A DNA stretch of 64,000 bases. Source: Styela clava. Its lineage: Eukaryota. Location: NCBI RefSeq assembly GCF_964204865.1, contig NC_135256.1:8804001-8868000 (forward strand), written 5' to 3'. Positions 6,849 through 39,227 of this stretch are shown here, piece by piece. The number at the start of each line of letters is the position of its first letter. Within the stretch, counting starts at the first letter, position 1. A program made the position numbers and the translations under genes. Below the pieces are notes generated by a model. The model did no database searches, was not told the DNA's origin, and saw only the letters and a program-made list of their open reading frames with translations.

Positions 6849-7140
6849 TCATAAGTTATTATAACTCATATCAAGTTCTCTTGTGGGACTAGGATGTTGC
6901 CTAAACTTTTCTATATTTCTTCTTGCCATGAGTGACTTCTTAATTTTAATGATTACATTGTTTACAATTCTGCATTTGCAGATTTGGGTTAGCATCTGAA
7001 AAATTACGGCATTCCTTTCTAACCATATTTTGTGTCTAGCAGTGCAAAATAGCAATATTATATCATTGCGTTCAAGGCTGGACAAATGTGAATCCCATCC
7101 AAATTTGATTTGATCCCATTCCCAGAAATAAACATTTGCA
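6849..7140 (-). mobile_element. 5'-truncated non-LTR retrotransposon fragment (ORF2 C-terminus, L1/Tx1-like)
   Basis: ORF with HKIWLERNAVIF, matching the IWxxRNxxxF motif typical of L1/Tx1 ORF2 C-termini. Confidence 0.55.
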
Positions 7141-7160
7141 TAGAAAAATCATGAATGAAT

Positions 7161-7503
7161 CAGTGCGGCGGTGTGGCTCAACGGGCTAAGCGTTAAGAAT
7201 ACGCTCGCCAACGCACCTCTGATTACTCTGCATGAGTTCGCAGGTTCGAATCCCATGCAGGGATGGTTATGTGCGAGAGGATTGCTGGACTCCTCGCCGT
7301 CGTTGGGTGGTTCACGTAACCGCTGGTCGGTTACGGCTTCCTCCACCACCAAGTCCATGCTTTCGAAAACAAACAATATAACTAATCCCATACCCGACTT
7401 GGAATGGTAACCGGACGAGAGGCCGTGGTTCGCCATATGGATAAGCCGTCTTATCGGCTTTCCTCTCCCCCGGGATAAATATGTAAATCCTATCCTATCC
7501 TAT
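7161..7503 (+). mobile_element. tRNA-derived SINE
   Basis: Pol III A box (gtggctcaacggg) and B box (ggttcgaatccc) in a tRNA-like head, ~340 bp long with an (atcct)n tail. A 3' fragment of the same family lies at ~11067-11140 (-). Confidence 0.85.
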
Positions 7504-8557
7504 GAAGGCAAAAAAATTATACATCCACAATGATAAAAAAATAAATAAATACAAACACAAACATATTATCCAATACCCATTTTTACATCGCTAGTCCAAT
7601 TTTAACATTCCATTTCGATTTCGATATTCCAAGTTATGTTGTCCATCGCAAGTCATTTTCCATGTTGTGATTTGTAGAATACCAATTAAAGATTAGATTT
7701 ATTTTAGTTTATGGATTAGGCATACAGGCATGTAAACAAAACATTTTAAAATTAATTTTAAAATTAAAATTAACACGATCAATTCATTCATTCAAACACC
7801 TCCCAGAACGGCTAAATGTCTTTTTGATTCAACCCCAACAACAACCGCAGTAGACTGAAATATCCCGCCTTTTCTGCATTTTATTTCAGCCGAAAAGGAT
7901 TTTTGTTCCTTATCGCCACCTTGTGCTGAATATAAAAAAAAAAAAAAAATCTTAGTACCGAATCTGTTCGAATTCCACTTTAGAATATTCATTGGAGAAA
8001 AATTTATGTATGAATATATATATGTATATTTATGAGAAAAAAAATCTCTTTCTCTCTCTCTTATTAAACAATTACGATATCCATGCTATACCAACTTCTA
8101 AAAAATTGTTGTACAAATTCACAGAAATAAAATAAATGTAGCACAGTTTTGACATCAATCTCCATGTCATCTACTTTATATAATAAATGATTTTCAGATA
8201 TTTTTGGAAAAGCAAATTTAACATGAAAAAGCCGATCATTAAAATAGTTTTTCATATATAGGCCTACATACAGCACTTTAAACTTGAGCAAAAGAATAAA
8301 CACTCGAAAGGGGAATCCCCAAAATATTTGCGCGGGCTTTTATTTTTCCCATGCAGTTATGTGTGAATTAGAATAATTAAATCAGTAAGTAAGTAAGTGT
8401 TTATTTCGATTTCCCAATATAACAAAACAATACATGGCAAAACAAACAAATGTACGGAAAATCAGGAAAGTGGGCAAAATCTAAAAAAGATTTAAGACGT
8501 GCTGGTGCACGTGCCGTGCCCACTTACCCCAAACAGCAAACAACACATTGAAGCAAA

Positions 8558-9157: not shown

Positions 9158-9719
9158 CTAAATTACCTCAACTATTTATAACTGTATTTAATAGTACTAA
9201 CATTTATTACTTATCGATCTTAAGATTTTCTTAAGTTGAATCTGCTCCAAATTTTGCATGTGCATGCATCATATCTCGGACCAGAAACTATTGATTTTGG
9301 GTTGATTATGTCGTATAATTAGCGAGTTATTAATTATTTTTTTCGGTCGATCGATAAGTCTTCGGTCTCCGACCGATATTCTTGTTTTAAAATTGAAAAG
9401 TTTCATCCATTTAAACTTTCATGTTGGGTGGGTTGAATATCACCCCCTTCAACTGATCAAACATGATCGATAACCTATCTAATTAGTGCAGTAGTGTAAA
9501 TGTTTTTCTATTTCCATGCATACCGTATTATAAAATTAATTATGTACTTACTTAAATGTGCTGAACGAATGGAATGTAATGGATTATTTGACTGGTGGAT
9601 ACATTGGATTGGGGTGAAATATATGAATAATTAAAATTCGGCCAAAATGTGGAAAAATAAAATCTTGGTGACTTCATGCAAATAAATTGAAATCACGTAT
9701 TTGGATAACCAAAAAAAAA

Positions 9720-9853
9720 AAAAAAGGGAACGCGGAAGATAATTCGGGCGTAAATACTTGGGTGTGGATGTGGCAAACAACACATTGAAGTAAATTGAAA
9801 AAAAAGGAACACGAAAGATAATTCGGGCGTAAATACTTGGGTGTGGATGTGGA
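9720..9853. repeat. Two-copy direct repeat (~50-bp core)
   Basis: aagataattcgggcgtaaatacttgggtgtggatgtgg occurs at ~9736 and ~9815. Confidence 0.85.
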
Positions 9854-11066
9854 GTTTTAACATGGAGTGTAATTTCTAATAGGCTATATCTGTACATATA
9901 AATAACGAGAATTGTAGAACATAAACAAACAAGCAGTGCGCAATATGTGGTAAATAATTTGATTACAAACGCACTCAACTAAACAACAAGGATAAAAGCA
10001 CCATGAAAGAAAACAACAACAAACGAAGTAAAATATGACAAGTGCATTGCCCTGGCGTTACAACTTCAGTTTTAATCAAAATTTGCTTAGTGCAGTAGTG
10101 TAAGTAGTCTTTTTTATGCAATCTACCTTCAAATATTCGTTACAATTGACTGTTCATGTTTTTCCCAGCTTCGACCAGTTTTCCATGATAAACTCCACGC
10201 AGGCCAGCAATGCTGGCCCAGCATGATCTGATGCGAACTGATCCATATCGTATCAGTACTGTATCCGACAACATCGTTTTGATTTAAGTTTGTATGTATC
10301 TTCTCAGTAGGGTTTATATTCGTCTAATTTCCAAGTTTTCGTCCAAATATTTCCTACTCCAGTATTCCATCGTTGATATTTTACCCGACGGCGGTCTCAA
10401 CAAGAACAAATAATAGCAGAACAAATAATAGCACGTGTAAATTTATGCATGGGGCGGAGGCATTTGGGTGCATAAATGAGTAGTATGCTTGTATGCCTAA
10501 TCTAATAATTACTAAAATAAATATATTGGTTGAACGGCCAATCACAACATGGGAATTAATTCTAAATGGACTATATGACATGGAATATCAAAATTGAACA
10601 AATGATGTAAATATGAGTAATATGGTTTTCTGTTGTTGTTGTAGCCTATAATCTTTTGTTTTTCTGAATTTTCTATGCAAATGTTTTTTTTTTCTTGGAA
10701 AATGGGTACTAATCTGGATCAAATTCGAACAATAATTGGCAAAAATTGAAATAATAGGCTACATTTGGATAAATCAAAACTATCCTATTCACAAATCCGA
10801 ATTAGAAAAAAAAAATTATTTATTCATTGTCATTCATTTTTCACTCTTCCAGTCTTCAATTCTGCAGTTTCTTCAACACAACTAACTGATTTGATGAAAT
10901 GTTTTTGTTTCCTTGGCCGAAAAGTTTGTTAGTCGGATTGCGATTAGCTCAATCTGTCAATACGCAATAATAGTCATCTGGTAGTACTGGCAGACCGGTA
11001 ACGAAGTTTGCTATTCAACTGGTTCATGCCGATGACTGACGGCTAACAATAGTCTGGAAGTAGACA

Positions 11067-20423: not shown

Positions 20424-21473
20424 TTATCTTCTTGAGGTCCCCCCAAACCCAGATGCAGTCCTTGATGTTCCAGATGATGACGACCTGCTGCCTCTGTATG
20501 TGGTATGAGATGTTCCCGATTGCCAGGAGTTGCCCCATCCTCGATTTCCTCCCCACCCACTGCTACCCCATCCACGATTACCACCCCATCCGCTTCCACC
20601 CCACCCTCCATTGTATCCAGTGCCATAATTATTTCTTGGATACCCATATCCATAATTATTGCCTCTTCGTCCAAAAAGATAACCAAGTACACCTCCCCAT
20701 CCCATGCCAGACCAAAAGCCACCAGCAGGTGATGAATTGTTTGTTGTCGTTGAAGAAGATGTACGTGTCCTGTCGCCGGTAGAATCAGAATACGCTGGTG
20801 GAGGTTCATAATTGCCACCAGTCTGTGAGTACTCTGGTTTGAAACCATAAGGAGGTGGTTGGTTACCAGGAGGTGATCTATGGTTAGAACTGGTACCTCT
20901 GGAATGGTTCGGTTGATTTTCACTTACAGCAGAACACATTTTATAAATTAGGAACACAATCGCCCCAACAACCAATAATCCCAGAAAACAAGATCCTGAA
21001 GACTCTTTATGCTGTAAGTTTGATTGTCCGTAACTATACCCACCCCAACTATTTTGGTTTCTGGATTTTCCTGCATCAGTTACATCAATTGTGTACTCCA
21101 AACCACAAGATCCTTTCAAAACATAGGGATCGTCTGGGTAGTCATAACCTTCACAAGTAACTTGTACTTTCCCAAAACGATACGAGTCATCCATATCAGT
21201 TTTGCATTCCCATTGAACATCATGGCCATCGAATCCCACATTTCTGCATTGGACTGTATGTGGAACAAAACCATGGCACCCCGCAACTCCTCCAACACAT
21301 TTCAACTGTGGCACAGGAGATGACCTTCGCCCGGTTGTCATTTGACCTTGATGAAGTGTTATTGCAGAAATATCACGTAAAAGTACTCGATCCGAACCAA
21401 AACCAAATGTCCACATACATGGTGTACAACATAGTATAACAATTCCAAGTAGTATGGTTATTTTTAACCACAT
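20424..21473 (-). CDS. SARAF: Store-operated calcium entry-associated regulatory factor (TMEM66), intronless CDS
   Basis: Signal peptide, TTGRRSSPVPQLKCVGG, DVQWECK, CEGYDYPDDPYVLKGSCGLEY, one TM helix, PPPY motif and C-terminal TRTASGFGGTSRR. Confidence 0.95.
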   Translation of the reverse strand: MWLKITILLGIVILCCTPCMWTFGFGSDRVLLRDISAITLHQGQMTTGRRSSPVPQLKCVGGVAGCHGFVPHTVQCRNVGFDGHDVQWECKTDMDDSYRFGKVQVTCEGYDYPDDPYVLKGSCGLEYTIDVTDAGKSRNQNSWGGYSYGQSNLQHKESSGSCFLGLLVVGAIVFLIYKMCSAVSENQPNHSRGTSSNHRSPPGNQPPPYGFKPEYSQTGGNYEPPPAYSDSTGDRTRTSSSTTTNNSSPAGGFWSGMGWGGVLGYLFGRRGNNYGYGYPRNNYGTGYNGGWGGSGWGGNRGWGSSGWGGNRGWGNSWQSGTSHTTYRGSRSSSSGTSRTASGFGGTSRR

Positions 21474-24709: not shown

Positions 24710-25622
24710 GCCTACAGTACAGGAATAAGAAGATCTTCAATAATAACCATATATTTGCACGCTCTTCAGTTTAGAACAAAGCAACGACTAACATACCGGA
24801 AAATATAATATAAGTTTGGGAACTACAGTAAAAACAGAAACAAAAAAACGGAATTCATTCGAATAAAAATGGTATGTATTTTCCAATTAAGTTCATCGTG
24901 TTCGAACACATAAAGTCAACTACGGAGTACATGTAAAATGGCCATGGACAATGTTTGTGCAGTTGAACAATTTATAGTTACAGGCATATTTAAATTTATA
25001 TATACAGATATTTAGCTCACATATGGGAAGAAAATTAACTATGTGGACTATTTTGAAAAATCCCACATTTACTGATTCGAACAACATTTCCTATTAAATG
25101 AAAAAATTACTTGCCCAAATGAAACTGTAGGATAGGTGTACGTTTGCGAGACGCAATAATTTATTTATTCGTATATTTCATACATCGGAAATGTGCATAT
25201 CATAATTGTCAGTGACTCACTGCAGTGATATAGTCGTTGTGGTACCAAATTGTGTCTTCTAATGAAACGTTACTTCGATCACAAATAGATTGGTATAAAA
25301 AGACATTATTTGAGGCAGAGTGGTCCAAACCCAGGCCCGCGGGCCACATGTGGCCCGCCGCTCCATTTTCTGTGGCTCGCGCCGCATTCTGAGAGTAGTC
25401 AAAATATCGTATATTAAATTGCTTCTCATGAAATAAATCAGAAAAATTGTTGACATATTGTTGTTATATCATAGCCATTATATAACTAGTCTGGAAGGCC
25501 GTATACTGACCTGTTGTTCACAGCGTCATCTAGTGTTGGCGTGGGTAATCCAAAACCACGGCGTCGTCTGCTCTATATTTTTAGGCCGCTCGCTGCTAAC
25601 GTTATTCAAAGTTCGAATGAAA

Positions 25623-26663
25623 ATGGATTTATCTGAGGAAGAAATGCTTGAATTTTTTGATGACGTGAGTTATATAAAATTGGTTGCTATACTAAATTAG
25701 GATTTGGTCCTGAAATAATGAATAGTAGTTTAATATATGAATGCAGAAGCCGGCTTTGGTTTGACTAAAAATTTGGGCAGTATTTTTACATTACATTTAA
25801 ATTTTGCTTTATATAAATACTTACGGCATATACTTTTTTAGACCAGAGTTTATACCTAAACTATTTTACAGCTTGATGACGAGATAGAAGAAAAATGGGG
25901 CATATCTGTAGTAGAAATTGACTACGGAAGCGTTGACTGCAAGAAGCAACTGCAGATTGCACTGAGTGATTTGAACATCCAGTTGAACCAGGAATCACCA
26001 CTGTGGGAGGAAGTTTTGGCGGATTTGATGGAAATTTCTAGGGAAGAGTCCAGAATTAAAATGACAGCTGAATACATTAAAAAATTGCAGAAGCCATACT
26101 CTAACAATTCTGAAATACCTCATTTGGATGTAAAACGAATAATCAAAACTGCTGCACCGAAAATTATAAAAGAAGCATTTCAGGTAACCCTAACTGAGCC
26201 GTTCATGCAAATTTCTGTAACCGAAGACGATGAAAAGGTGATAGAGTACCTAGCTGGGGGATTGCTAAAATGGGGAATGAAGCGTCTAGGTGGAGAAGGT
26301 GCTTCATGGTGCGAAAGCCACGCTTCTGTGCGCGATCTTCCTGATTGCTTTCAAGAACGCAATAGAGGCGGTCTCATATCAGCATCCGAAACATTCGTTC
26401 GCTTCCTTATCTCTGTGGAACGTGAATTCCGGTCTCAAGTTTGCAAAAGGATAATAGATGAACGACGTATTATTGGAAATATTGACATGGACCCCTTCAG
26501 CCCCAGTGAATCCAGTATTCTGACAATTCTCGTGCGAAGATTTATTCGAACAAGGGCCCATATCCATTGCAATACTGAACTGCAGAATAACGTGTTAAAA
26601 AAAACAACTGGACCCAAATCATATGGACTTCGCGATGCTTTGAAGGATTGTTTTTCCAAGTAA
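25623..26663 (+). CDS. Second gene of the P element: 277-aa protein resembling the P-transposase C-terminal domain
   Basis: Exon 1 25623-25664 (MDLSEEEMLEFFDD|gtgagt) joins in phase 0 to exon 2 25872-26663. Motifs EYLAGGLLKW, NRGGLISASETFVRFLISVEREF and RRFIRTR. AATAAA at ~26684. Confidence 0.8.
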
Positions 26664-27090
26664 TCTCATCATTATACCAAAACAATAAAAATTAGCCAAC
26701 GGAACTAGTTTCATTTTGTGTTTTTTTAGCATAAGAAATACCATAGGTAAACTGAACAGGAATTTTGACACTAATATGAAGAATTACACAGACCTGGTAG
26801 AGAGAAACAAAAAATACACAGGCCAATAATTGATAGCTATTTTTAAAACATGGATGAGGTTCCATAAAATTATACGGGGAAAGAGAAACTTTTTTTTTTG
26901 AATTCAGTCTCTCGAATAAGAGGCATTTTTGGCGATCCATCGATTAATATAAAAATACAATTTTGGATACATAAACTATTATTAAAAGCAGAGACGGGCC
27001 AGTCACTAAAATTAGAAACGATTTAAGAAAATGAACTAGTACTAGAATCCGGATGTATTCGAAGCAAAAAGTTCAGCTTCTGGAAATTTA

Positions 27091-30000
27091 TCAATCATTT
27101 TTAATCGCAACATTAGAACCAAAAACACTATTAAAAGATTTTACAACATCTATTGATCTGGAGTTTGATGTGAACAAACTTAAGGTAGGGTTTCCAGTAC
27201 GGGAACCTCGATCGCGTTGATGACCAAAATATGCCTCTAGAGGGTCTTGGTTAATACGCCGTGGTAAAACATAGCTCGCACCACTGCTCAGAACAATACG
27301 AATAATCGCAGCCATTGAAACGGATGCCATTCTCAAGCCATTTCTTGTGGCATCACTGAGCAGCATTTTCTGGCGATTAACATCTCCTACTAGTGGCCGA
27401 CTGTACGCCTTTTCTTCCCAATCATCCAGGTATTTTAGAAAATCTTTCTCAAGCCATTCTATTCTTTTATCATAGATGTTGTAAAAAGGCTGGCGAGATG
27501 GTTTAGCATTTTTATTCTGGAATCCTGAGTTCATGCAGTCAAACCACTTGTCTGAATTTAGAATAAACTCTGCTAAAGCAGAAAAACCTCGATTTTCTAT
27601 GGCTTTACCTAAAAAAAATTATGGGTTTGAAATAGAGGTGAATCAAATTCATGCTGTTTTTTAACCTTGAAGAAGTATATATCTTACCTACAGTATAAGA
27701 CAAAGTTTGTGCTGCGATACGTACACTCATTTTTTCCCAGGGACTCGGATTAATATGTGATTCAGTGATTTTATGAAAGAGCCTCAACTCTCCCCGCTTT
27801 AGATCTTCCTAAAAAGAAATTTCATTTCATGATGAAAGTGTTAAGCAGAGGCTTTCACAGCGACATATAGATTCATACCCTTATTAGCTGCTTTACAGGT
27901 TCCATATAGATGTCTTCTCCGTTCCACAGATTTTTTTTCGTACTGAGCAAATTATTACGACAGGTTTTCAAAAGGTGAGGTGGATCCGGCAGCATGTAGA
28001 TGTACCTTTGAATTTAAAATTTTTGCATTACAACCATGCCTTGAGACATATGAGTGCCATCACATACAAATGTTTTGTATACCGAGTAACATCAGCAGGG
28101 TTTCTCATTCTGTAAGGAATCCTGTCCTCTTTGGCTGCCATTAAATTTATAGCTGACCTATTTGCTGCAAGACCATCAACTTCAAAATGAAACCAAATCT
28201 TTATAATTCTGATACTGATATATTCAGGTGCTTAACTAGACTTAGCTGTAATATAACACACAAGAATGCAATGAATTATTACAACTTTTCTGTATCTTTC
28301 TCGTCTTTCTGTGTTTCTTTCACTAATATCTGTGTGACACCATTGTTACAAATTTTGTACAGAAATAGTTCTATGCTTGACTACATGCTTTTCCATGGCT
28401 AAATGCACACAACTTGAAAAAAATACCTATCTATGTCTGATCAAAATGATTCAACGTATAACAGAAACCACTGAAAAATTAACTTACAAACAATAGCAAG
28501 GATAACACAATGAGTCTGGTGAGGTATTTCCACCAAAAGGTCACATAATAATAGGACAAGATCCTCTGCATTGATTCCAGCCGTGGGATAATACGCAAGA
28601 ACGCCATCCAATTTGTGATTTGTGATGCCTGTGAAATAATGATATAGTTTTAGGCGGCTATCATAACACCTCAAGCAAAGGAAGTAGTTACTGGTTGTTA
28701 TATTCCAAGTGTGAACCGTGGAGTTGCACAATTGTACAGTGAAAAATGGAATGTGTGCACAGGCACTAAAATATAGGAGTGGCGTCTCTTATTGAAAATA
28801 ACTTTACCTCGAACATATATCGCAAGGACATGATTGGCAATCCTGTTATACGATTTGGACAAATTGTTAATGCATTCATTTCCAAAATCGACATAACCTG
28901 TAACCTCCCCAGTGGATGATTTGAACACAAGATCTTCTGAAACAGAAAAAAAATTCTTTCTAAGCTGCGAAAATTCATGTATATTCTGGAGAAAAAATAG
29001 TAGATTTTGCATCAGGAGTTGCATAGCCAAATTAATAAAAAAAAAAATAAGCCTACTCATTCTACTGAAACGTATAATCTGAACTACCTTTTATAGACAT
29101 TTCATCAACTGCAAGTACAACCATTTTGTCACATTCTTTCTCTGCAGAATCTGCTTCTAATTGTATACGCGCAGCAATGGATTTTTGAAATCCGTATTCA
29201 CATGAACCACAGAAAGCATTTCTGCTATTTTGCAGTGTACGTGGAGCAGGCAAGACCATGATTCTTTGTATGAATTTATACGCAGATGGTGACTTTGCAT
29301 ACAACATGAGACAGTAACTAAAAGTAACAATTGATGTGAACTACAAACAATATCTCCCAGGTCTTTAAATAACTGGTCTATCAATATAACAAGCAAAAAG
29401 GTAGTCAAAATCGCCAGAGAGATGAATGAATTTAATAATAATAATCCGAAGTAGATTTACCAACCGAATAATAGATGGTGGATATCTCCTTCCAAATTTA
29501 CTGTTAGATTTTTGCAAATGTTGCTGAACTTCCCACCAGTCTTTTAAAAACTCATCCTCTGACAATCCTTCAATCATGGAGGACATATTTGTTGAAACCA
29601 TGATGCCAGCCTTTCGTACCTCATTTTCAAGATCACTTAAACTGCAAATAGTTTGTAAAACATGAAAGTAAATGAAAACAAAAGCCTTCGTCAATGGTCA
29701 TTGCGTATAATAACTCACCGCTGTCTATTTATATTAGCTAGTGCGACCAATCTTTCTTTACTAGCTGTAGCATAAGTACACCGATTAGCAAGTGGAACAT
29801 GTTTTAGTTTTTCGAATCTATTGGTTTTTCGCTTGTCACTGTCTTGATCATGCACATGGAGACGCATACAAGTAGAGCAGATGTTGGGTCTTGCACCAGC
29901 ATAAGAATACGCTATTTCACATTGAGAGCTGATATATCTGTATTGATACAATACCAAAGATAAATTCAACAAAAATACAATTAATTATATATCTGTATAG

Positions 30001-31054
30001 TATATCTGACTGAACACAAATATATCTTACCTTAATTTCAAGGAAATTTCGCCAGTATCTTCTATTTCTGCAACACTTCTGGGAATCCATGAACTCTTTG
30101 TGGAAACAACATTATAACCAAAACAAGGAGTGAGATCAACCAAGTTTTTGAGTAAGATTGAAATTGAAATTCCTCTCAAACTTAGTGTCGATGATATAGT
30201 GGAAGAGTAAACTCCAGCAAAAGCGCAAGAAAAGTAAAATGGTTTTTGATCAAATTGGCAAATTAAAAGGCTTATTTCCGGTGTCGCATGTAAACTGTGA
30301 TTAGAGTAGTATGTGAAATGAGCTTTGTGTGCATTAATTCGATGCATTCTCCAGTTTTTCAGGGTAATACTTTCAAAAGCTGTAATTATTTCATTGATGG
30401 AATTGTAAATCGAAGATTGAGATGATGAAGATGGACAGTCATTTGTGGATGAATATTTGGGAACAATCCTTCTTGGTGGGCAAAGAGATACTTCATGCGA
30501 TTTTCTTGGCAAACATTTTGTAGGTAATGCTCCAAACTTAATCCAACTTCTTTTATTGGTCTTTTGGATATCTTCATCCTCGAAATGATCACCACAAATT
30601 CTGACCTTACCATCCTCAACTTTGCTTTTGAAATTAGGAGAGAAGCGATATTTGAACACAACCTGGGTGCAATAGAAAATTACTTAGCAATTAATATTGC
30701 AAAATAAGTGAGTTAATTAGAATACATAATATTAGAATGCATAAAGCACAAAATACACAGTGAAAACTCTTTAGGCTACTTCACATACATCAGTTGCATG
30801 CAGCATATTTCTGAAATGGAAGCATAAACTTCACCCATGCTTTTGATGGCCGAAATGAAATACGGAAGAAAGGGGAAAATTGTCGATACCAAACAAACCT
30901 GATGAAACTTTTGTGCCCATTCCTTTGAAGGCATTCCAAATTTCTTATTCTTACCATCCGGGACATGATACAAATGGTCACCATTCCCGGATGAACTTTT
31001 GCAACCAGGAATGCAGCAGTATGATCCAGACCATCGATGCTTGCTTGGAACCAT
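27091..31054 (-). CDS. THAP-domain P-element transposase, 11 coding exons, 848 aa, no disabling mutation seen
   Basis: Exons 31054-30899, 30662-30031, 29937-29719, 29641-29465, 29317-29088, 28936-28808, 28628-28488, 28179-28083, 28005-27879, 27808-27688 and 27608-27091. All are GT-AG and phase-compatible (2,547 nt). THAP CCIPGC...ICGDHF...ALP; SPSAY...LPAPRTL; catalytic VDEMSI, FDG, DPPHLLK and NQDPLEAYFG; GTP-insertion motif KMSVRIAAQTLS. Confidence 0.93.
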
Positions 31055-32118
31055 AATTAAATCTGTAACTTACCTGAAAAGCAAATTACTGGCGTAAAAG
31101 TGATTAAAAATTGACAGCACCGGTACTACGGTACCGGTACCTGTATCGCAGTGGCTTACGATAGGATTCTGAACTGCCTTTCCTGCATATACGGTATATA
31201 TTCATATTTTATAATAATATTATGCATTTTTATTTTCAGTTTTCTATATCTTGTCAACTTCGCGCAACTTCAAATCTGTAAACATACCCTGTAAAAAATC
31301 CAACAACGCCTGTATGATTCGATTGTCCAGCGGACGACAGAGGTGTAAAACCCACGCTAACACCAGATGTCGCTGTCAACAACTCGGTGTCATGCAAGAA
31401 AGCTAAAGCTTCCAGACTAGTTATATAATGGCTATGGTTATATCACTACTGTGACTGAATTGACTAGTATGATGGCTAGTTGAAGCAACTAGCGAAGTTG
31501 AAGATGTGATGGGCAGTCTAAATTGTTACCTGGATTCCGATCGTTTTGGTTGGGAATATATGCCGACAATATAGGCCTGATAGAAAACTAAAAATCAAAT
31601 GCGAATTCGATTAGCCTAGTGTTTACACAATAGGCCATGGGCCGAAAGCCGTACGGTGTCGACTGTCGGTTGGTGGTGACTGTTTGGGGGGAATGTCAAC
31701 TTTGTATCATTCGATTCAGAAATGATTCCTGATTACGGTAAACTAAAGTTGACATCCTCAAAGTGGAGCAATTACGCGCAAAAGGCGCCGAAACTTGCCT
31801 TGTCGCGCCACCTCAATCGGATTAATGACGTAAAAAAATCTTTCGTCACGCTTGGTTGGTTTGCGAATAAAAACGTAAAATAGACGTATTTTGTAATTCT
31901 TATTTTACATGTTTTAATATTTTTCAATTTATATAATTTTTTTGTGAACGTTTACGCGCAATTTTGTAATAAATCTCCGCTATCCGTCGCTATCGTTGCT
32001 AGGCTACGGGCGAAGCCGCCGACTGTCGTCTGCCAGTAGTTCGACTGCTATTATTTTTACGTTCCGTTTCAGGTTCAGTGTTCGGTGATTTCAATGAGAT
32101 TCCGATAGATATTAAACT

Positions 32119-35100
32119 ATGTCAGAAACCACATGCTGTATACACTACCACGACTGCGACGATGGCCTTTTGACTGAGATATCGGTCAAAAGTTGTAAAA
32201 GGATATGGTAGGCTATAGTTCATTAGCCTGGAAAGATTTGGAATGTGAGGTAGATAAAGAAATAGCAATAAATATTTTGAAGTTGGATGAAGATATTCTT
32301 AAAACTAAGCAATGCCACAAAAAATGTTATTCAAAGTTCACGAACATAACAAGAATTAACAAAGCTCGTTCTAAAAAGAAGCCCATAGACACCGAAAATA
32401 GATCTGAATTAGGAATCAAGCCAAAAAGAACTTCAAGCGAAATTTTTGCAGATATTGGTAACAAATTTGCAAGACGGAATAAGAATGTTCTTCCCAAAAC
32501 ATGCATTATATGCAGAAAAGAAAAATTTATTGAAAGACATAAAGCACATTCAAGAGAAAAACTGTCATGTTGCGAATATTCGTCTGGTAAGATTTTTTCA
32601 GATAATTCAGTATAGATGAGGGGGTCTGGCATGGATATATCATTTATTTTAACCAGGCCTTGGGTTGAACACCAATTCAATATTCTTGTTGCAAATTCAT
32701 AAATAACGCTATAAGGTAATTTATATAATCCAGGCAGTTTATAATTGAGTGTCAGGATGACTAACATGTATGAGTTTGTTGTATAGCTGATTTTTAGGCA
32801 CACATAATAGAATTCGAATAACATATCAGTTTAGTTATTGATGTTAAAGCATTTGTTTAGTATAGCAACGCACATGTATTACATGATTTTAATTTAAAAG
32901 TTCGAGAGAGATTTCTCATTTTAGTTCCATACTGATGTAGGCAATATTTTATTTCAGGTGGCCTTTTCTACGAAGCTGCCCTGGCAAGAAACGATGAGTC
33001 TGTATTGGTGCAAATCAGAAATAGAGACTTGGTAGCGATCGAAGTGCGATATCATCCGTCGTGCTATAAAGAATACATAAAAATACTAACAATCAAACCA
33101 ATATCTTCGTCAAATATCAACAACGAAAATGTATACACCAAACATTTTAAAAATTTTTGCACATCTGTTGTTAATTCTATAATAATAGAAAATGGAAATC
33201 CAATTACACTCATTAAATTGAAGCAGTTGTTCGTAGAATTTGTTGCCAAGGATGGCCTGTACATAGATAGTGACCTACAAACGTCATATTTTAAACAAAA
33301 GCTGAAAACATGTTTACCAGCATTACTTTTTTTACGACCATCAATGCGCAGAAAAAGCGAAATTGTGTATTCACCGGAAAGCAAAAAACACATCGCAGAC
33401 TATTTGGAAATAAATGGAAATGACTATCATTACGATGAAACATCTCAAGTAGATTTTATATCCGAAGTCAAACGAGACATGTATAGATCTGCCGTTTTCC
33501 TGAAGAATGTGATCAAAAATTACGAAGGATGTGAAAAGACCTGGCCACCAACATCATCGGATTTCGAACTTCGTAATTTACAGAAAAGCATCCCAGTAGA
33601 ACTTTATAATTTTTTAGCATGGATAGTAGGAGCAAGTGAAGATATTAGCAACGAAGGATTCCTAAATGTCTCGGAATTCTACAACATAAGGTTAGTTTCG
33701 CTTGCCCAAAATGTCATCTATCTGGCTTCAAGGGGTAGAAAACAAACACCGAAACACTTAGCGTTAGGAATGACAGTTAGGCATTGGACCGGTTCTTCTC
33801 GACTTATAGAATTGCTCCACGGCCTTGGCCACTCGGCATCCCATTCTGTTGTGCTGGAGCATGATACTGCATTGACCGAATTGCAACTGCAAAAACACAC
33901 GATTGTTCCCGATTAGGGTTAGTTCGGATACCTATAATTTTCACTATCCGGATAACGGATATATCCGGGTATTCCGTATTTTAAATATACGGTTAACCGG
34001 GTAGTTACTGCTGATTTTAGAGAACCGATTTCGCAGGATTTTCGCGGTGAATTGAACGAATAACACCACACAGTTCTGTTGTAAATACTCACATATGTAT
34101 TATTTTTCTTGAATATGAATTATTGTGCATTTTAATATTGCATGTGTCAATAAATAATAATTTAAGCTCAGTAGTCGTACCGATGTACAGCGGAATAATA
34201 AAATGAAACATTTTTTGAAAATATTGTGTCCTAATTTTTTTTCCCCCAACTGCTAAGTTATTTTCCCTATTATGTAAAGATTTATATTATTTTTACTTTA
34301 TTGTAAAGTTTTTTAAAAGTTTCTTTTTGTGTCTAGAGCCTCTTTTCTTTAAATTTTGACTCGTACTAAATTTTAGTGTCGCAGACTCACAATGATCATT
34401 TTTGATCATCCGCACCTTCCTATCAATTGCAATGAAATTTAATATTGTCATGTATAGTATTTTGTTTTCTATAATATTTGGTGATTTCTTGCACGACGAA
34501 ATAAACTTTGTTAATATATACCACAAGAGCATGCATATAAATGAAATCATGAACACAAAAAATCGTGCATTTCGAACATTTTATTTCGGTGAGAGAAGTA
34601 TTCAAAAAATAGAATATAGGGGGAACAAATTCCGTGAAGTGTATAGGAAAATATAAGTCATTTGAACAAAAATTTTAATAACAAAGCAAATTGATGATTA
34701 TGAAAAAACCGAAGTGGTCAGAAATTTCTTCTAATTTGAAAACTTCACTTATTTAACATGTCACTGTAAATATTCTCACGTTTGTACTAATTAGGCCACA
34801 ACTTTAAATCTATTTCCATTCGAATACCTTTTAAACTAAATTAACAGAGCCAAAACAATGCTGCGCCAGTTTTTGAACAACTTTACTTACCACCCTAAAT
34901 GAGTAAACAAAAAACATGACACGATACAGAGTCTGTCACATTAAACTTTTCTGAAATATTATAGACCATTTTGCAAACAAATTTGTTTGTGAAAGTTCCA
35001 TGAAAACCATAAATGTAATAACAGCCTTTCCTCCTCATTTTGAAATTTTCGAAAACGTCACTAATAAAGGCGGTCGAATTTTACAGGCTAATTGTATTAT

Positions 35101-38100
35101 CATCGCCGATCGTTTTCTTCCGCATCGCGTTATTATTTGGGGAATTAACATCGGCATTATGCCAGTTTTAATTTGAAAAGAAGTTACATCCCGTGAAAAG
35201 TTACCCTTGTTGTAAATTCAGTAAATACGATTATTACGAAATTTTGGCGATTCAACAGCGCCTAAAATAGAGTCTTGTTTTATCTATCACTGGCTCATAA
35301 TTCAAGAGTCGTGGTATTTTCGTTAGCATTCAATTCCTTATTGTCAGTCAAAAATGTGTGTTTCAGATCTACTCTCTTAACGATAGATAGATACGACGAT
35401 AGATAACATACTGCGGCCATTTCAGTTCCGGGCGAAATAAAACAATTATCGGCGTTATATACCGACGAAACTGAACCCGACTTTTCTCCCGAAAATGTTG
35501 ATATATAACTATAAGCTAATTAATATCTGCATTTATTGTACTAAATAAATTATACTCATTGGAATTGCAATAATAGCTCAAATTTGATGAATTTTCAAGA
35601 TAGCAAAATAGGAAATTGGATTTGTTCGTGCAGCTTACCATTTATTTTCATATCTAGAGTAGAAATGATTTTATTTTAAGGTAAGTCGGGCTCTTCTATA
35701 CCGCAAATACGCAATAATCACATTTTTCTGCGTGTTTTGTGATGTAATACTATAGTCAAGTTCACTCCAGCATTACACGGATGACTAAAATATGCAGAGT
35801 GGTGTGGATATAAGTGAATATTATATGCTCTGAGAGATGTCATTGGCCACTCAACAAAAAATATAAAAATCACTAATGCGCATATGCATTATTTATACTG
35901 CTCTATTATCCGGTTAACCGTTACAATAATATCCGGTTATCAGATAGGAAAATACCTCTTGGTTAATCGGTTATCCGGTTAACCGCTATCCGGATAATCC
36001 AACCCTATTCCCGATGGGTTTCTACCGCGCATTCCGTCAACAATTGTTTGGGATAATAATGATTTCAATGAAGAGACAAAATCTGGAGAAGGAACGACAC
36101 ATAATACAAATGGAATTTTAATACAGGTCAGAGAAACTGTTGTTGCCTCTCAATCACGAGAAAAACTAAGCGACGTTCTGTTCCAACTCGATCGGAATTC
36201 ATAACCTCGTACCGGGGTTCAAAGACTTCCGAACCTGCTAAGATTTCAAAAGAAATTATGTATTCCACTGCCTGTTCTTCGATAACTTCCAAATATTTGA
36301 ACATAGATCTTGCATACGTACTTCTTAAACTCCCAGAAGTTTCAAAAACAGTTGTTCCGGGCTGGACTGCTTTTAATACCATTCTTCATAAAAGTACTGC
36401 CCGTGTGTCAACAATATATCAACAATTAACACAGTACTCGAAAAAAGTGTTGCTATTGCTGATGAACTTGACTTACACTCTGTTGTGGTGGTATTTGATC
36501 AGGCCATATACGCTAAGGCCCAAAAAATACGTTGGAGCAATCCACTTTTCTACAAAAGATTGGTTTTGCGACTTGGAGAGTTCCATACATGCATGTCATT
36601 CCTCTCTGTAATTAGAAAACGATACGAAAGCTCTGGTCTATCGGATATATTAATAGAGTCCCGTGTCGTTGCTCCAGGTTCCATTAATAGTATAATGCAT
36701 GGTCGCCATTACATTAGGAGTATTCGAGCCCACAAACTCGTGTTTGAGGCGTTGCATAGGATGCGGTGGAACGTATTCATCAAAAACCAATCATTGCAAA
36801 GCAAAGCCAAGGTTTCCGATTTGGCATCAAAGCTGAATAATGCTTATACAGACCCTCAACTATTCAAACAAATATGTGAAAGCAAAGAAGTGAGGAGTCT
36901 AATGGTGGATTATCAGCTTTTTATAGAGCATCAGAGCAAGATGAATAAAACATTTAGTTTATGGAGTTCTTATATCGATATGGTTGAACTTCTGCTGCAA
37001 TTTATTCGTGCTACTAGAGACGGCTTATGGGATCTCCATCTTGCTACACTTCATAAAATGCTACCCTGGTTTTTTGCATATGATCATATCAATTATGCGA
37101 GATATGTCTCAGTCTATTTGTCTGAAATGGAAAATTTGTCATCAAGTCATCCTGAAATATATCAGTATTTAAAGCAGGGAAATTTTTCTGTACAGCGTCA
37201 TGCTCAATATGGTTTCAGCCAAATTGCCTGCGATCAATTAATTGAGCAAACTTTGAACAGAGATTCTAAAACCCGAGGAGGAATTCGTGGGCTATCTTTA
37301 ATTAAACAAAAATGCTGTAAATAGATAGCTTCTATCACACCATCAACGCGCTCTTATTTCTATGGCATGCAGGGAAATGGCTGGAAAAGATGCTACTAGA
37401 CGACAACGCAAAGACCTTGATTCTGCTAACTCAATCAGAGATGAACAAAACGTGCAATCAATAGTCGATACGGTGACCTTCATGACCGACCCGTTTGATT
37501 TAGAATGCGACTCTCTGATGAACCTTTCTTCGGGGTCCGTTGCATCAGATGCTATTAAAATGGATATGGAAGACGCATTTAGACTGGGAAAAAACAACGC
37601 AGATTTATTTTGCCAAAACCGAATTCTTGCTAATTCAACTATAAGTATATTTACTCCGATAAAACAGCTAAAATTAAAAACATTTGCTTCGGGTAGCGCC
37701 AAAATTAACGAAAAAGTACCACACTTCTCTAAAAAATCAGAAGATAATTTCTATAGGCTTCTACTTATTGGAAAAACGAAAAATATAGAACTGCAAGAAA
37801 TGCTAGAATATCCATTAACTGATATCCCCGCATCTATTGGATCACCAAACGGAACGCCGGTGAGAACTAATAAAGCCAGGCTCTTGCACGAATTGGAAAA
37901 TAGTGTGCCAGAAGTATTAGTCAAATCATATCCATTGAATGCAGCTCTTGTAATAGATGGTATGGCTTTATTGCAATCTTTGAATAATATTCCGGAAACT
38001 TTTGGAAGACTCTTAAATATGATTTTCGACAGAATAATTAATATGGCAAAGTCTTACAATTGTAACAGGGTTGACTTTGTGTGTGATACTTATCCAGATA

Positions 38101-39227
38101 TTAGCATAAAAAATTTTGAAAGGTGTCGAAGATCATCGAATGAAAGCGAAATCATCAAAATAGTAGGATTGGAACAAAAAACGCCTAAACAGTTTAAAAA
38201 GTTTTTGTTTTCCGGCAAGAATAAGGAGGCTCTTGTAGAATTTTTAATTTCGTTTGCTCCGAGTTATCAACCTTCATGTTCTGTAGGGAAAATGAAAATT
38301 TTTATCGGCCACGGTGCTGAGTGTCACTGCATCAATTTCAGGCAATTCCAGCTTTGCGTATCGGGCGAGCCTTCTTTGGTCAACGATCACGAAGAAGCAG
38401 ATACCAAGCTTTTATTACACGCAAAGCATTGTTCATCGGAATTTAACGACGTAATTATTAACAGTCCTGATACCGATGTATTGATATTGTCATTGGCACA
38501 TTCTTCCTATATTGGATGTAATTTGTATTTTTTAACGGGAAGTGGTTCGCAGTCCAGGATGTTATCAATCAGAAAAATGGTTAACTACTTCGGAAATGTC
38601 TTTTGCAAAGCTATTCTGGGTCTACATGTATTTAGCGGATGTGACACCATTAGCGCTTTCCGTGGAAAGGGAAAAGTGAAGGGTATGCGACATTTATTGA
38701 AATCAAAAGAATTCATACAAGCTTTTTCAAAGTTAGGAGATCAGTGGTACATTCCAGAAAATATTTATATTCAACTTTCAAAGTTTGTTTGCACTCTTTA
38801 TGGTTATTCTGATGAGATGTCTGTTAACAAAGTACGTTTTGAAATATTTCAAAATAAATCGTTAGACGAACCCTGTATGCCCCCATCTGATGATGCTATC
38901 GTACTCCATTCAGCACGTGCAAACTACCAATGTGCCATACACAGAAGAGCACTGCAAAATTTTATATCTGCTCCAAATCCTGATGACCACGGATGGATAG
39001 TAAATGATAGCAATATAAATATTAAATGGATTTCAAAACAAATTGCCCCAAACTCAGTGCTAAACCATTCTAAATGCAGATGCGCCAAATTAAATTGCAA
39101 GAGCAGCAAATGCCCTTGTGTGAAGTCAGGGTTTTCATGCTCCAGTTTGTGCAGCTGCAACGATTGTAGCAACGCGGATGTCATACGTGAGGAAGACGAT
39201 GATATTAATATCGAAATAGGGTTTTAA
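32119..39227 (+). pseudogene. Academ transposase pseudogene (DDE core, XPG/FEN1-like nuclease, Cys-rich tail)
   Basis: Motifs WDNND..EET..G.GTTH, FDQAIYAKA, LGEFH and DQLIEQTLNR; XPG-like HEEADT, DTDV and SGCDT...GKGK; C-terminal CRC..C...CPC...C...CSC..C. Disrupted by frameshifts (~32205, ~36250, ~36410-36480, ~37300), an in-frame TAG (~37326) and the hAT insertion at 33914. Intron at ~32587-32957. Confidence 0.88.
33914..36007. mobile_element. Non-autonomous hAT (Ac-like TAGGG ends) element inserted in the Academ transposase
   Basis: tagggtt...aacccta ends, perfect 8-bp TSD ttcccgat (33906-33913, 36008-36015) and atccgg/taaccg subterminal repeats. Removing it restores the frame ...HTIVPD-GFLPRIPSTIVWDNND. 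Confidence 0.92.

Follow-up and report, generated by a model that had tools for sequence, protein, structure and literature searches.

A P-superfamily transposon of Styela clava with a transposase probably encoded in two convergent genes

Within a 64,000-nucleotide stretch of the Styela clava genome (contig NC_135256.1, positions 8,804,001 to 8,868,000; hereafter "the window", whose own numbering is used below), a DNA transposon of the P superfamily occupies positions 25470-31436 (5,967 bp). It carries two spliced genes lying tail to tail: a minus-strand transposase gene without the C-terminal domain (CTD) of P transposases, and a plus-strand gene, open reading frame 2 (ORF2), whose product has a C-terminal half homologous to that domain. 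The element is probably an autonomous, recently active transposon whose transposase is encoded in two pieces, the ORF2 protein acting in trans. No P-superfamily element with two genes is known to us from the literature, and none was found in a literature search that had Repbase outside its scope.

The CTD of P transposase and of THAP9 was termed functionally uncharacterised in a 2026 preprint (10.64898/2026.08.31.747927), whose own CTD survey lists no tunicates and no stand-alone CTD proteins. The evidence on the need for this domain conflicts, with its DNA contacts and the 66-kDa repressor of Drosophila (PMC7776569) on one side and active CTD-deleted enzymes (10.64898/2026.08.31.747927) on the other. 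With the CTD naturally present as a protein of its own, the Styela element would offer a direct test of the domain's role, each protein being open to dosing, mutation or omission. Since its copies are 99.6% identical and transcribed, the element may also serve as a two-component genetic tool in ascidians.

Termini, copies and mobility

The ends of the element are as follows.

25463..25469: left target-site duplication (TSD) GTTATAT, the same 7 bases as after the right terminal inverted repeat (TIR)
25470..25497, plus strand: left TIR, 28 bp, 100% complementary to 31409-31436
31409..31436, minus strand: right TIR, 28 bp, 100% complementary to 25470-25497
31437..31443: right TSD GTTATAT, read from the sequence

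A first-pass annotation of this DNA had described perfect TIRs and a 7-bp TSD, and both are there, with 28/28 nt complementary and GTTATAT on both sides. The genome assembly (377 Mb in 380 contigs) holds a second copy on contig C13, 5,982 bp long and 99.6% identical, with other flanks and its own 7-bp TSD, GTCCTGG; it differs from the window copy by 9 substitutions and 3 indels, all three of the latter outside exons. Perfect 28-bp TIRs with 7-bp TSDs at both loci agree with the TIRs and 7-8-bp TSDs by which the P superfamily is recognized and, being found at two different loci, mark the element as something other than a chance repeat. Near-identical copies with other flanks and their own TSD therefore identify 25470-31436 as a real, recently mobile transposon. 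A third copy, on contig C14, is 96.6% identical and has a stop codon inside its ORF2 frame, and many shorter relatives at ~82% identity are present in the genome; the 96.6% copy and the ~82% subfamily both keep the same gene order.

A separate observation concerns C19:5.35-6.73 Mb, where the first 981 bp of the element recur in at least 12 copies spaced ~100 kb apart, which look like part of a large tandem segmental repeat.

The ORF2 gene

In what follows X1, X4 and X5 are runs with RNA-like contigs, while X9 is a DNA run. The plus-strand gene and the spacer behind it are laid out thus.

25617..25664, plus strand: ORF2 exon 1, 48 nt (16 codons, MKMDLSEEEMLEFFDD); GT..AG joint from 25664 to 25872 in X1 and X5; matches RefSeq model P0043
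25665..25871, plus strand: ORF2 intron, 207 nt; joint in RNA-like runs of two studies, no joint in DNA run X9
25872..26663, plus strand: ORF2 exon 2, 792 nt (263 codons plus stop); open frame, 100% identical to P0043
25926..26195, plus strand: N-terminal helical domain, predicted (model residues 19-108); AlphaFold2 pLDDT 83-95 over residues 21-100
26211..26600, plus strand: part with the predicted P-transposase CTD fold (model residues 114-243); VIA-align and Foldseek
26684..26689, plus strand: poly(A) signal AATAAA, 21 nt past the stop; an RNA-like contig ends at 26686
26664..27090: spacer separating the stop codons of the tail-to-tail genes; sequence, and RNA-like contigs over 26710-27374

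The encoded protein of 279 amino acids (aa) is 100% identical to RefSeq "uncharacterized protein LOC120327130 [Styela clava]" (P0043), and a contig of run X5 (record 13) spans 25901-26656 of exon 2. Two spliced genes, tail to tail inside the TIRs, had been proposed in the first-pass annotation, the second of them with its own ATG, intron and poly(A) signal; sequence and contigs agree with this in each respect (a spliced joint, AATAAA at 26684). Its length of 277 aa for ORF2 needs correction, as an in-frame ATG lies two codons upstream and 277 corresponds to a start at the second ATG. The N-terminal ~110 residues are confidently predicted to form a helical domain, conserved across the ORF2 family (profile A1), for which no match over Z 7.3 was found among 48,161 representative chains of the PDB. 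This domain is not found in P0045, a protein of the second family described below, which has a C2H2-like zinc finger instead.

ORF2 and the P-transposase C-terminal domain

Chain B of PDB entry 6P5A is the CTD of the Drosophila P transposase (DmTNP) as a separate chain, residues 617-751. It was compared with an AlphaFold2 model of ORF2 exon 2 (mean pLDDT 84), so that the evidence from fold rests on prediction. VIA-align of the model against residues 617-734 of 6p5a_B gave Z 10.9 and a root-mean-square deviation of 2.7 Å, with 112 of 118 residues aligned; in a scan of the same 48,161 chains that was independent of Foldseek, 6p5a_B was the sole chain at Z >= 8, the next reaching 7.3. The structural search against the Drosophila enzyme that had been proposed at the outset gave the same answer, Foldseek ranking 6p5a_B first with a probability of 1.00 and a target-normalised TM of 0.60.

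The CTD has three helical blocks, in the order YIAGY, GGL.xPS...E..F and F.KIR; ORF2 has VIEYLAGGLLKW, NRGGLISASETFVRFLISVEREF and RRFIRTRAHIH, which match the published consensus of the TNP and THAP9 CTDs. The series read in the first pass -- IEYLAGGLLKW, NRGGLISASETF..EREF and RRFIRTR -- is indeed present. With hhalign, family profile A1 aligned to P0045 over the C-terminal 143 columns (95.4%, E 1.8e-8); P0045 alone reached 6p5a_B at E 1.8e-4, and the combined profile A2 did so at E 2.7e-5. As judged by these profile comparisons, the link between ORF2 and the DmTNP CTD is real but transitive, running through P0045. Taking the modelled fold and this chain of sequence matches together, homology of the C-terminal half of ORF2 to the P-transposase CTD, as first suggested from the motifs, can be regarded as established.

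Several direct searches weigh against this reading, and might instead suggest that ORF2 is an unrelated captured or host-derived helical protein whose likeness to the CTD is a common arrangement of helices. The proposed comparison with the Pfam P-element C-terminal family, PF12596 (Tnp_P_element_C), failed: it gave no match at E <= 1 for ORF2 or its family members, nothing at E <= 10 for P0043, P0044, P0045 and P0008, and nothing at E <= 0.1 in the whole genome. Against PDB sequences, ORF2 alone found no P-transposase match and the A1 profile alone did not reach 6p5a_B. The ESM Atlas gave no usable match for ORF2 residues 110-263, and helical models often reach middling Z values by chance. The observed Z, however, lies 3.6 above that of the next chain with 95% of the domain covered, the three motif blocks stand in the published order, the sequence links through P0045 are significant, and the ORF2 copies found in the genome all match the element or adjoin a P-transposase gene, with no lone gene among them. 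On these four grounds an unrelated captured gene was rejected as very unlikely.

The catalytic transposase gene

The minus-strand gene has 11 exons, with all introns GT..AG, and 2,544 coding nt for a protein of 848 aa, the length given in the first-pass annotation. Domain searches were made exon by exon, neighbouring exons being joined just for counting phase and stops. All exons are on the minus strand.

30899..31054: exon 1, beginning at the ATG (putative THAP, first half, CCIPGC); sequence, RNA-like contigs and frame
30031..30662: exon 2 (putative THAP, second half, and linker); PF05485 E 0.0028, contigs and a joint
29719..29937: exon 3; joint 29641/29719, acceptor placed by a contig loose end at 30031
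29465..29641: exon 4; joints in X1, X4 and X5
29088..29317: exon 5 (end of the helix-turn-helix (HTH), first catalytic Asp, VLAVDEMSI); PF12017 E 2.2e-4, PF21787 E 6.5e-4; acceptor joint in X1, donor inferred and picked by reading frame
28808..28936: exon 6 (N-terminal part of RNase H); PF21787 E 9.9e-4, joints
28488..28628: exon 7; joints, frames
28083..28179: exon 8, inferred only (second catalytic Asp, FEVDGLAAN); AG/GT sites and frame
27879..28005: exon 9 (DPPHLLKT, start of the insertion domain); sequence, Pfam and RNA-like contigs
27688..27808: exon 10 (GTP-binding insertion domain); PF21788 E 6.6e-4, joints in X1 and X4
27091..27608: exon 11 and stop (end of the GTP-binding insertion, C-terminal part of RNase H, catalytic Glu, 47-residue tail); PF21789 E 2.5e-4

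The inferred exon 8 has a length of 1 mod 3, which restores the frame for the total of 848 aa, and its motif matches VVADGASCN of the family on contig C19 described below. The first-pass annotation had read THAP, HTH, DDE and GTP-insertion motifs in this protein. Most of this stands: the HTH, both halves of RNase H and the GTP-binding insertion were matched by exon-level Pfam searches, all slightly below the cut-offs, as a single exon carries only part of a domain. THAP has to be put more cautiously, since it is split by intron 1: exon 2 matches PF05485 at 18.8 bits (cut-off 23.9) and exon 1 has no match, and the series CCIPGC...CGDHF...ALPT is read in the translation. The catalytic D, D and E are supplied by VLAVDEMSI in exon 5, FEVDGLAAN in the inferred exon 8 and the Glu of NQDPLE, which aligns with NQDIVE of DmTNP; both Asp motifs come from the translation and were set beside those of the C19 family.

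Exon 11, whose joint is seen, aligns to residues 422-557 of DmTNP (6p5a_A) at E 5e-5. The stop lies 47 residues past the Glu of NQDPLE (...GSNVAIKND*), as had been noted at first reading, or at about DmTNP residue 578 by alignment; a recent preprint placed its CTD deletion boundary at DmTNP residue 567, so the Styela stop is slightly beyond it. RNA-like contigs run unspliced over 26710-27374, across this stop codon, so that no further transposase exon is spliced on. The C-terminal domain is thus not on the same polypeptide as the catalytic core: the transposase gene is without it, and the domain is encoded on the opposite strand, in ORF2.

Transcripts

RNA-like contigs cover 10 of the transposase exons, and 7 of the 10 model junctions are seen in them as GT..AG joints; an eighth, between exons 2 and 3, is indicated by the loose end at 30031. 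A look for RNA from both genes had been proposed beforehand, and spliced RNA-like contigs were found for ORF2 and for most transposase introns.

In X1 and X4 exon 7 is joined directly to exon 9 (window 28003-28487) and exon 8 is skipped; no RNA-like contig among those examined lies over 28057-28454, thus none over exon 8. The skip shifts the frame, with a stop after 12 codons and a predicted THAP and HTH product of ~573 aa. By analogy with the splicing control of the Drosophila P element, this isoform may act like a repressor.

Contigs over the spacer reach 26710, and no minus-strand poly(A) signal AATAAA for the transposase was found in 26600-27100; the 3' ends of the convergent transcripts may therefore adjoin each other or overlap.

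Other variants were seen beside these. X4 also has exon 4 joined to exon 6, skipping exon 5 with the first catalytic Asp, and in X1 the stretch 29006-29317 is retained unspliced. A deletion derivative lacking window 27492-29826, with fixed breakpoints and the filler AA, occurs both in the DNA run and among the RNA-like runs, and its breakpoints (27492/29826) are shared by at least 8 loci of the ~82% subfamily in the genome. The deletion copies still have the ORF2 side and the exons that encode THAP, in which they resemble KP-type P elements, and in most of those checked ORF2 has stop codons.

Recurrence of the split layout and selection on ORF2

A search of the genome with the ORF2 profile found three more distant places. 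At C19:15766259-15774783 lies a second split P family, ~8.5 kb long, with a copy at C2:30753856-30763523 that is 95.6% identical; it has ~440-bp terminal inverted repeats starting CAATGAGC and a 7-bp TSD, TTGTGAA. Its transposase ends 75 residues past the Glu, and the transposase frame and the open frame of the convergent CTD gene end 23 bp apart, the whole layout being inside the TIRs. The product of that CTD gene is P0045 (LOC120341353), with its C2H2-like finger at the N-terminus. A third split family has the same tail-to-tail order at C6:18971000-18980999, where, counted within this interval, the CTD gene lies at 6925-8034 on the plus strand and the last transposase exon at 9497-10000 on the minus strand. 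The same interval has, at 1-2256, a reverse-transcriptase ORF like that of non-LTR (long terminal repeat) retrotransposons.

A HMMER search of 1.84 billion representative proteins for ORF2 homologues gave 28 matches, all <= 298 aa and none of them a fused relative. Eleven of the 28 are full-length, at 28-39% identity; several are on contigs of 1-3 kb.

Yet another P family in this genome (C9:2461391-2462803, C13:4852609-4854021 and C6:11274482-11275894) has a single frame of 822-834 aa with matches to the HTH and to the N-terminal and C-terminal parts of RNase H. PF12596 and the ORF2 profile gave no match at these loci. As ~165-215 residues of room follow the C-terminal part of RNase H, a fused CTD may coexist in the same genome.

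Selection was estimated from the ratio of nonsynonymous to synonymous divergence (dN/dS), with copies of the ~82% subfamily as the comparison. Because the pairs have branches in common and some of the copies are dead, the ratios are upper bounds.

ORF2 exon 2: dN 0.08-0.11, dS 0.31-0.37, dN/dS 0.22-0.32
Transposase exon 2: dN 0.075-0.11, dS 0.21-0.34, dN/dS 0.29-0.50
ORF2 intron and spacer: 70-77% identical to the subfamily copies

At that identity the ORF2 intron is more diverged than the ORF2 exon, where dS is ~0.33. By these codon comparisons, ORF2 is under purifying selection as strong as that on the tested transposase exon.

The layout might also be explained by an ordinary single-gene P element that underwent an internal inversion just once or was misassembled, leaving ORF2 as a functionless stranded last exon. 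The split site is that of the last intron of the Drosophila P element, at the boundary of the 66-kDa product, and an inversion of the last exon could yield such a layout. The site is also that of the linker in the Drosophila protein (PMC7776569). Both a one-off inversion and neutral evolution of ORF2 had been named beforehand as outcomes to look for. The second is contradicted by the dN/dS of ORF2, ~0.3, which speaks against a stranded exon as well; as for the first, two other divergent families of the genome are convergent, and no fused relative was found. The element itself stands at two loci with separate TSDs, the 96.6% copy and the ~82% subfamily share its gene order, ORF2 has its own ATG exon, spliced intron and poly(A) signal, and stand-alone homologues exist at 28-39% identity. 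An independent DNA run contains the stretch, against an artefact of assembly. Given the copies with their own TSDs, the recurrent layout, the selection and the independent run, this explanation was rejected as extremely improbable.

A putative role for the separate domain

In the Drosophila strand-transfer complex the CTD is all-helical and, carried on a flexible, disordered linker, lies against another subunit (PMC7776569), where it makes many DNA contacts, with both transposon and target DNA (PMC7776569). Since the Drosophila CTD already acts across subunits from a loose tether, its delivery as a separate chain is plausible, and for that reason ORF2 would be expected to assemble with the catalytic dimer. 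The minus-strand gene would then encode the DNA-binding and catalytic subunit, with THAP, HTH and an RNase H with a GTP-binding insertion, ending within the region equal to the flexible linker of the Drosophila P transposase; the plus-strand gene would supply a 279-aa protein made up of a family-specific helical domain followed by the all-helical CTD. We infer that the product of ORF2 assembles in trans with the transposase dimer at the paired transposon ends and fills the place of the fused CTD, between one subunit's RNase H and the other's GTP-binding domain, where it would be in contact with the DNA of both transposon and target. A separately transcribed second gene would thus be required for transposition, or at least for integration, or would tune it.

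Two further points stand on the other side. The full-length catalytic mRNA was not seen, as the contigs examined skip exon 8. CTD-deleted DmTNP and human THAP9 were also reported to still excise and integrate, DmTNP at the wild-type level, and CTD-deleted hTHAP9 to integrate ~60% better (10.64898/2026.08.31.747927), so the CTD may be dispensable. ORF2 could accordingly be a true CTD homologue that is no more than a dispensable modulator or brake (less integration, target choice, titration), with the catalytic protein working alone; its extra conserved N-terminal domain differs between families, as that of a regulator might, and separate promoters permit separate control. Yet the purifying selection on ORF2 is as strong as that on the transposase and the convergent CTD gene has been kept in three divergent families, while in Drosophila the domain touches DNA at many points and the 66-kDa product that lacks it acts as a repressor, not an active enzyme (PMC7776569). 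A dispensable modulator is therefore judged unlikely, and a transposase in two pieces, with the ORF2 protein acting in trans, remains the reading we prefer.

A broader proposal may be put forward tentatively, though we consider it rather doubtful: that the split arose long ago and marks out a whole clade of P transposons with two components, present in several animal lineages. In this clade the CTD protein would be an obligatory, separately regulated licensing subunit with a logic like that of RAG1/RAG2, a new function such as the reading of targets or chromatin would come from its family-specific N-terminal domain, and the exon-skipped transcripts would encode THAP-only repressors.

Relationships to known systems

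The Drosophila melanogaster P element, with its 87-kDa transposase (6P5A), shares with the Styela element the TIRs, the 7-8-bp TSD, a putative THAP, HTH, the GTP-split RNase H and the DDE residues; the CTD is all-helical in both, with three shared motif blocks and, by the model, one fold. In Drosophila, however, the CTD is the last exon of the same gene, behind a disordered linker, while in Styela it has a convergent gene to itself, which uses a start, intron and poly(A) signal of its own and adds a helical domain of ~110 aa. The Styela element is also larger, at 6 kb with 11 + 2 exons as against 2.9 kb and 4 exons. The 66-kDa repressor of Drosophila, made when the third intron is retained, resembles the Styela catalytic protein in ending nearby, without the CTD, but it is a repressing splice variant, whereas the CTD-less Styela protein is the only full-length product of its gene and has all the catalytic motifs. 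The exon-skipped transcripts and the fixed internal-deletion derivative would also be predicted to give truncated, THAP-bearing proteins like the 66-kDa and KP products.

THAP9, the domesticated vertebrate P transposase, has its domains in the same order, with three conserved helical regions in a CTD that is reported to restrain integration (preprint 10.64898/2026.08.31.747927); it is a single-copy host gene with no TIRs and a fused CTD, while the Styela element is mobile and split. Galileo, of the P superfamily, has long TIRs, as does the C19/C2 family with its ~440-bp repeats and 7-bp TSD, but it has one transposase gene, where the C19/C2 family adds the convergent gene for a CTD with a C2H2-like finger.

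Two genes within one pair of TIRs are also known from ProtoRAG (RAG1L and RAG2L, convergent) and from PIF/Harbinger (a transposase and a Myb-like protein), and by analogy the second protein would in each case be non-catalytic and expected to act with the transposase. There is no homology between these systems and the Styela element: in them the partner is unrelated to the transposase, while here it is a domain that is fused to the transposase in relatives, and the requirement for the partner has been shown in them, while here it is a prediction.

Neighbouring sequences

The host gene SARAF, a regulator of store-operated calcium entry, lies 4 kb from the element, at 20424-21473 on the minus strand (PF06682, E 7.8e-90). 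On the other side, at 32205-39227 on the plus strand, consecutive long ORFs of 136, 303, 279 and 621 aa, with weak matches to DUF6589 and to Tesmin/TSO1 CXC, are probably another mobile element.

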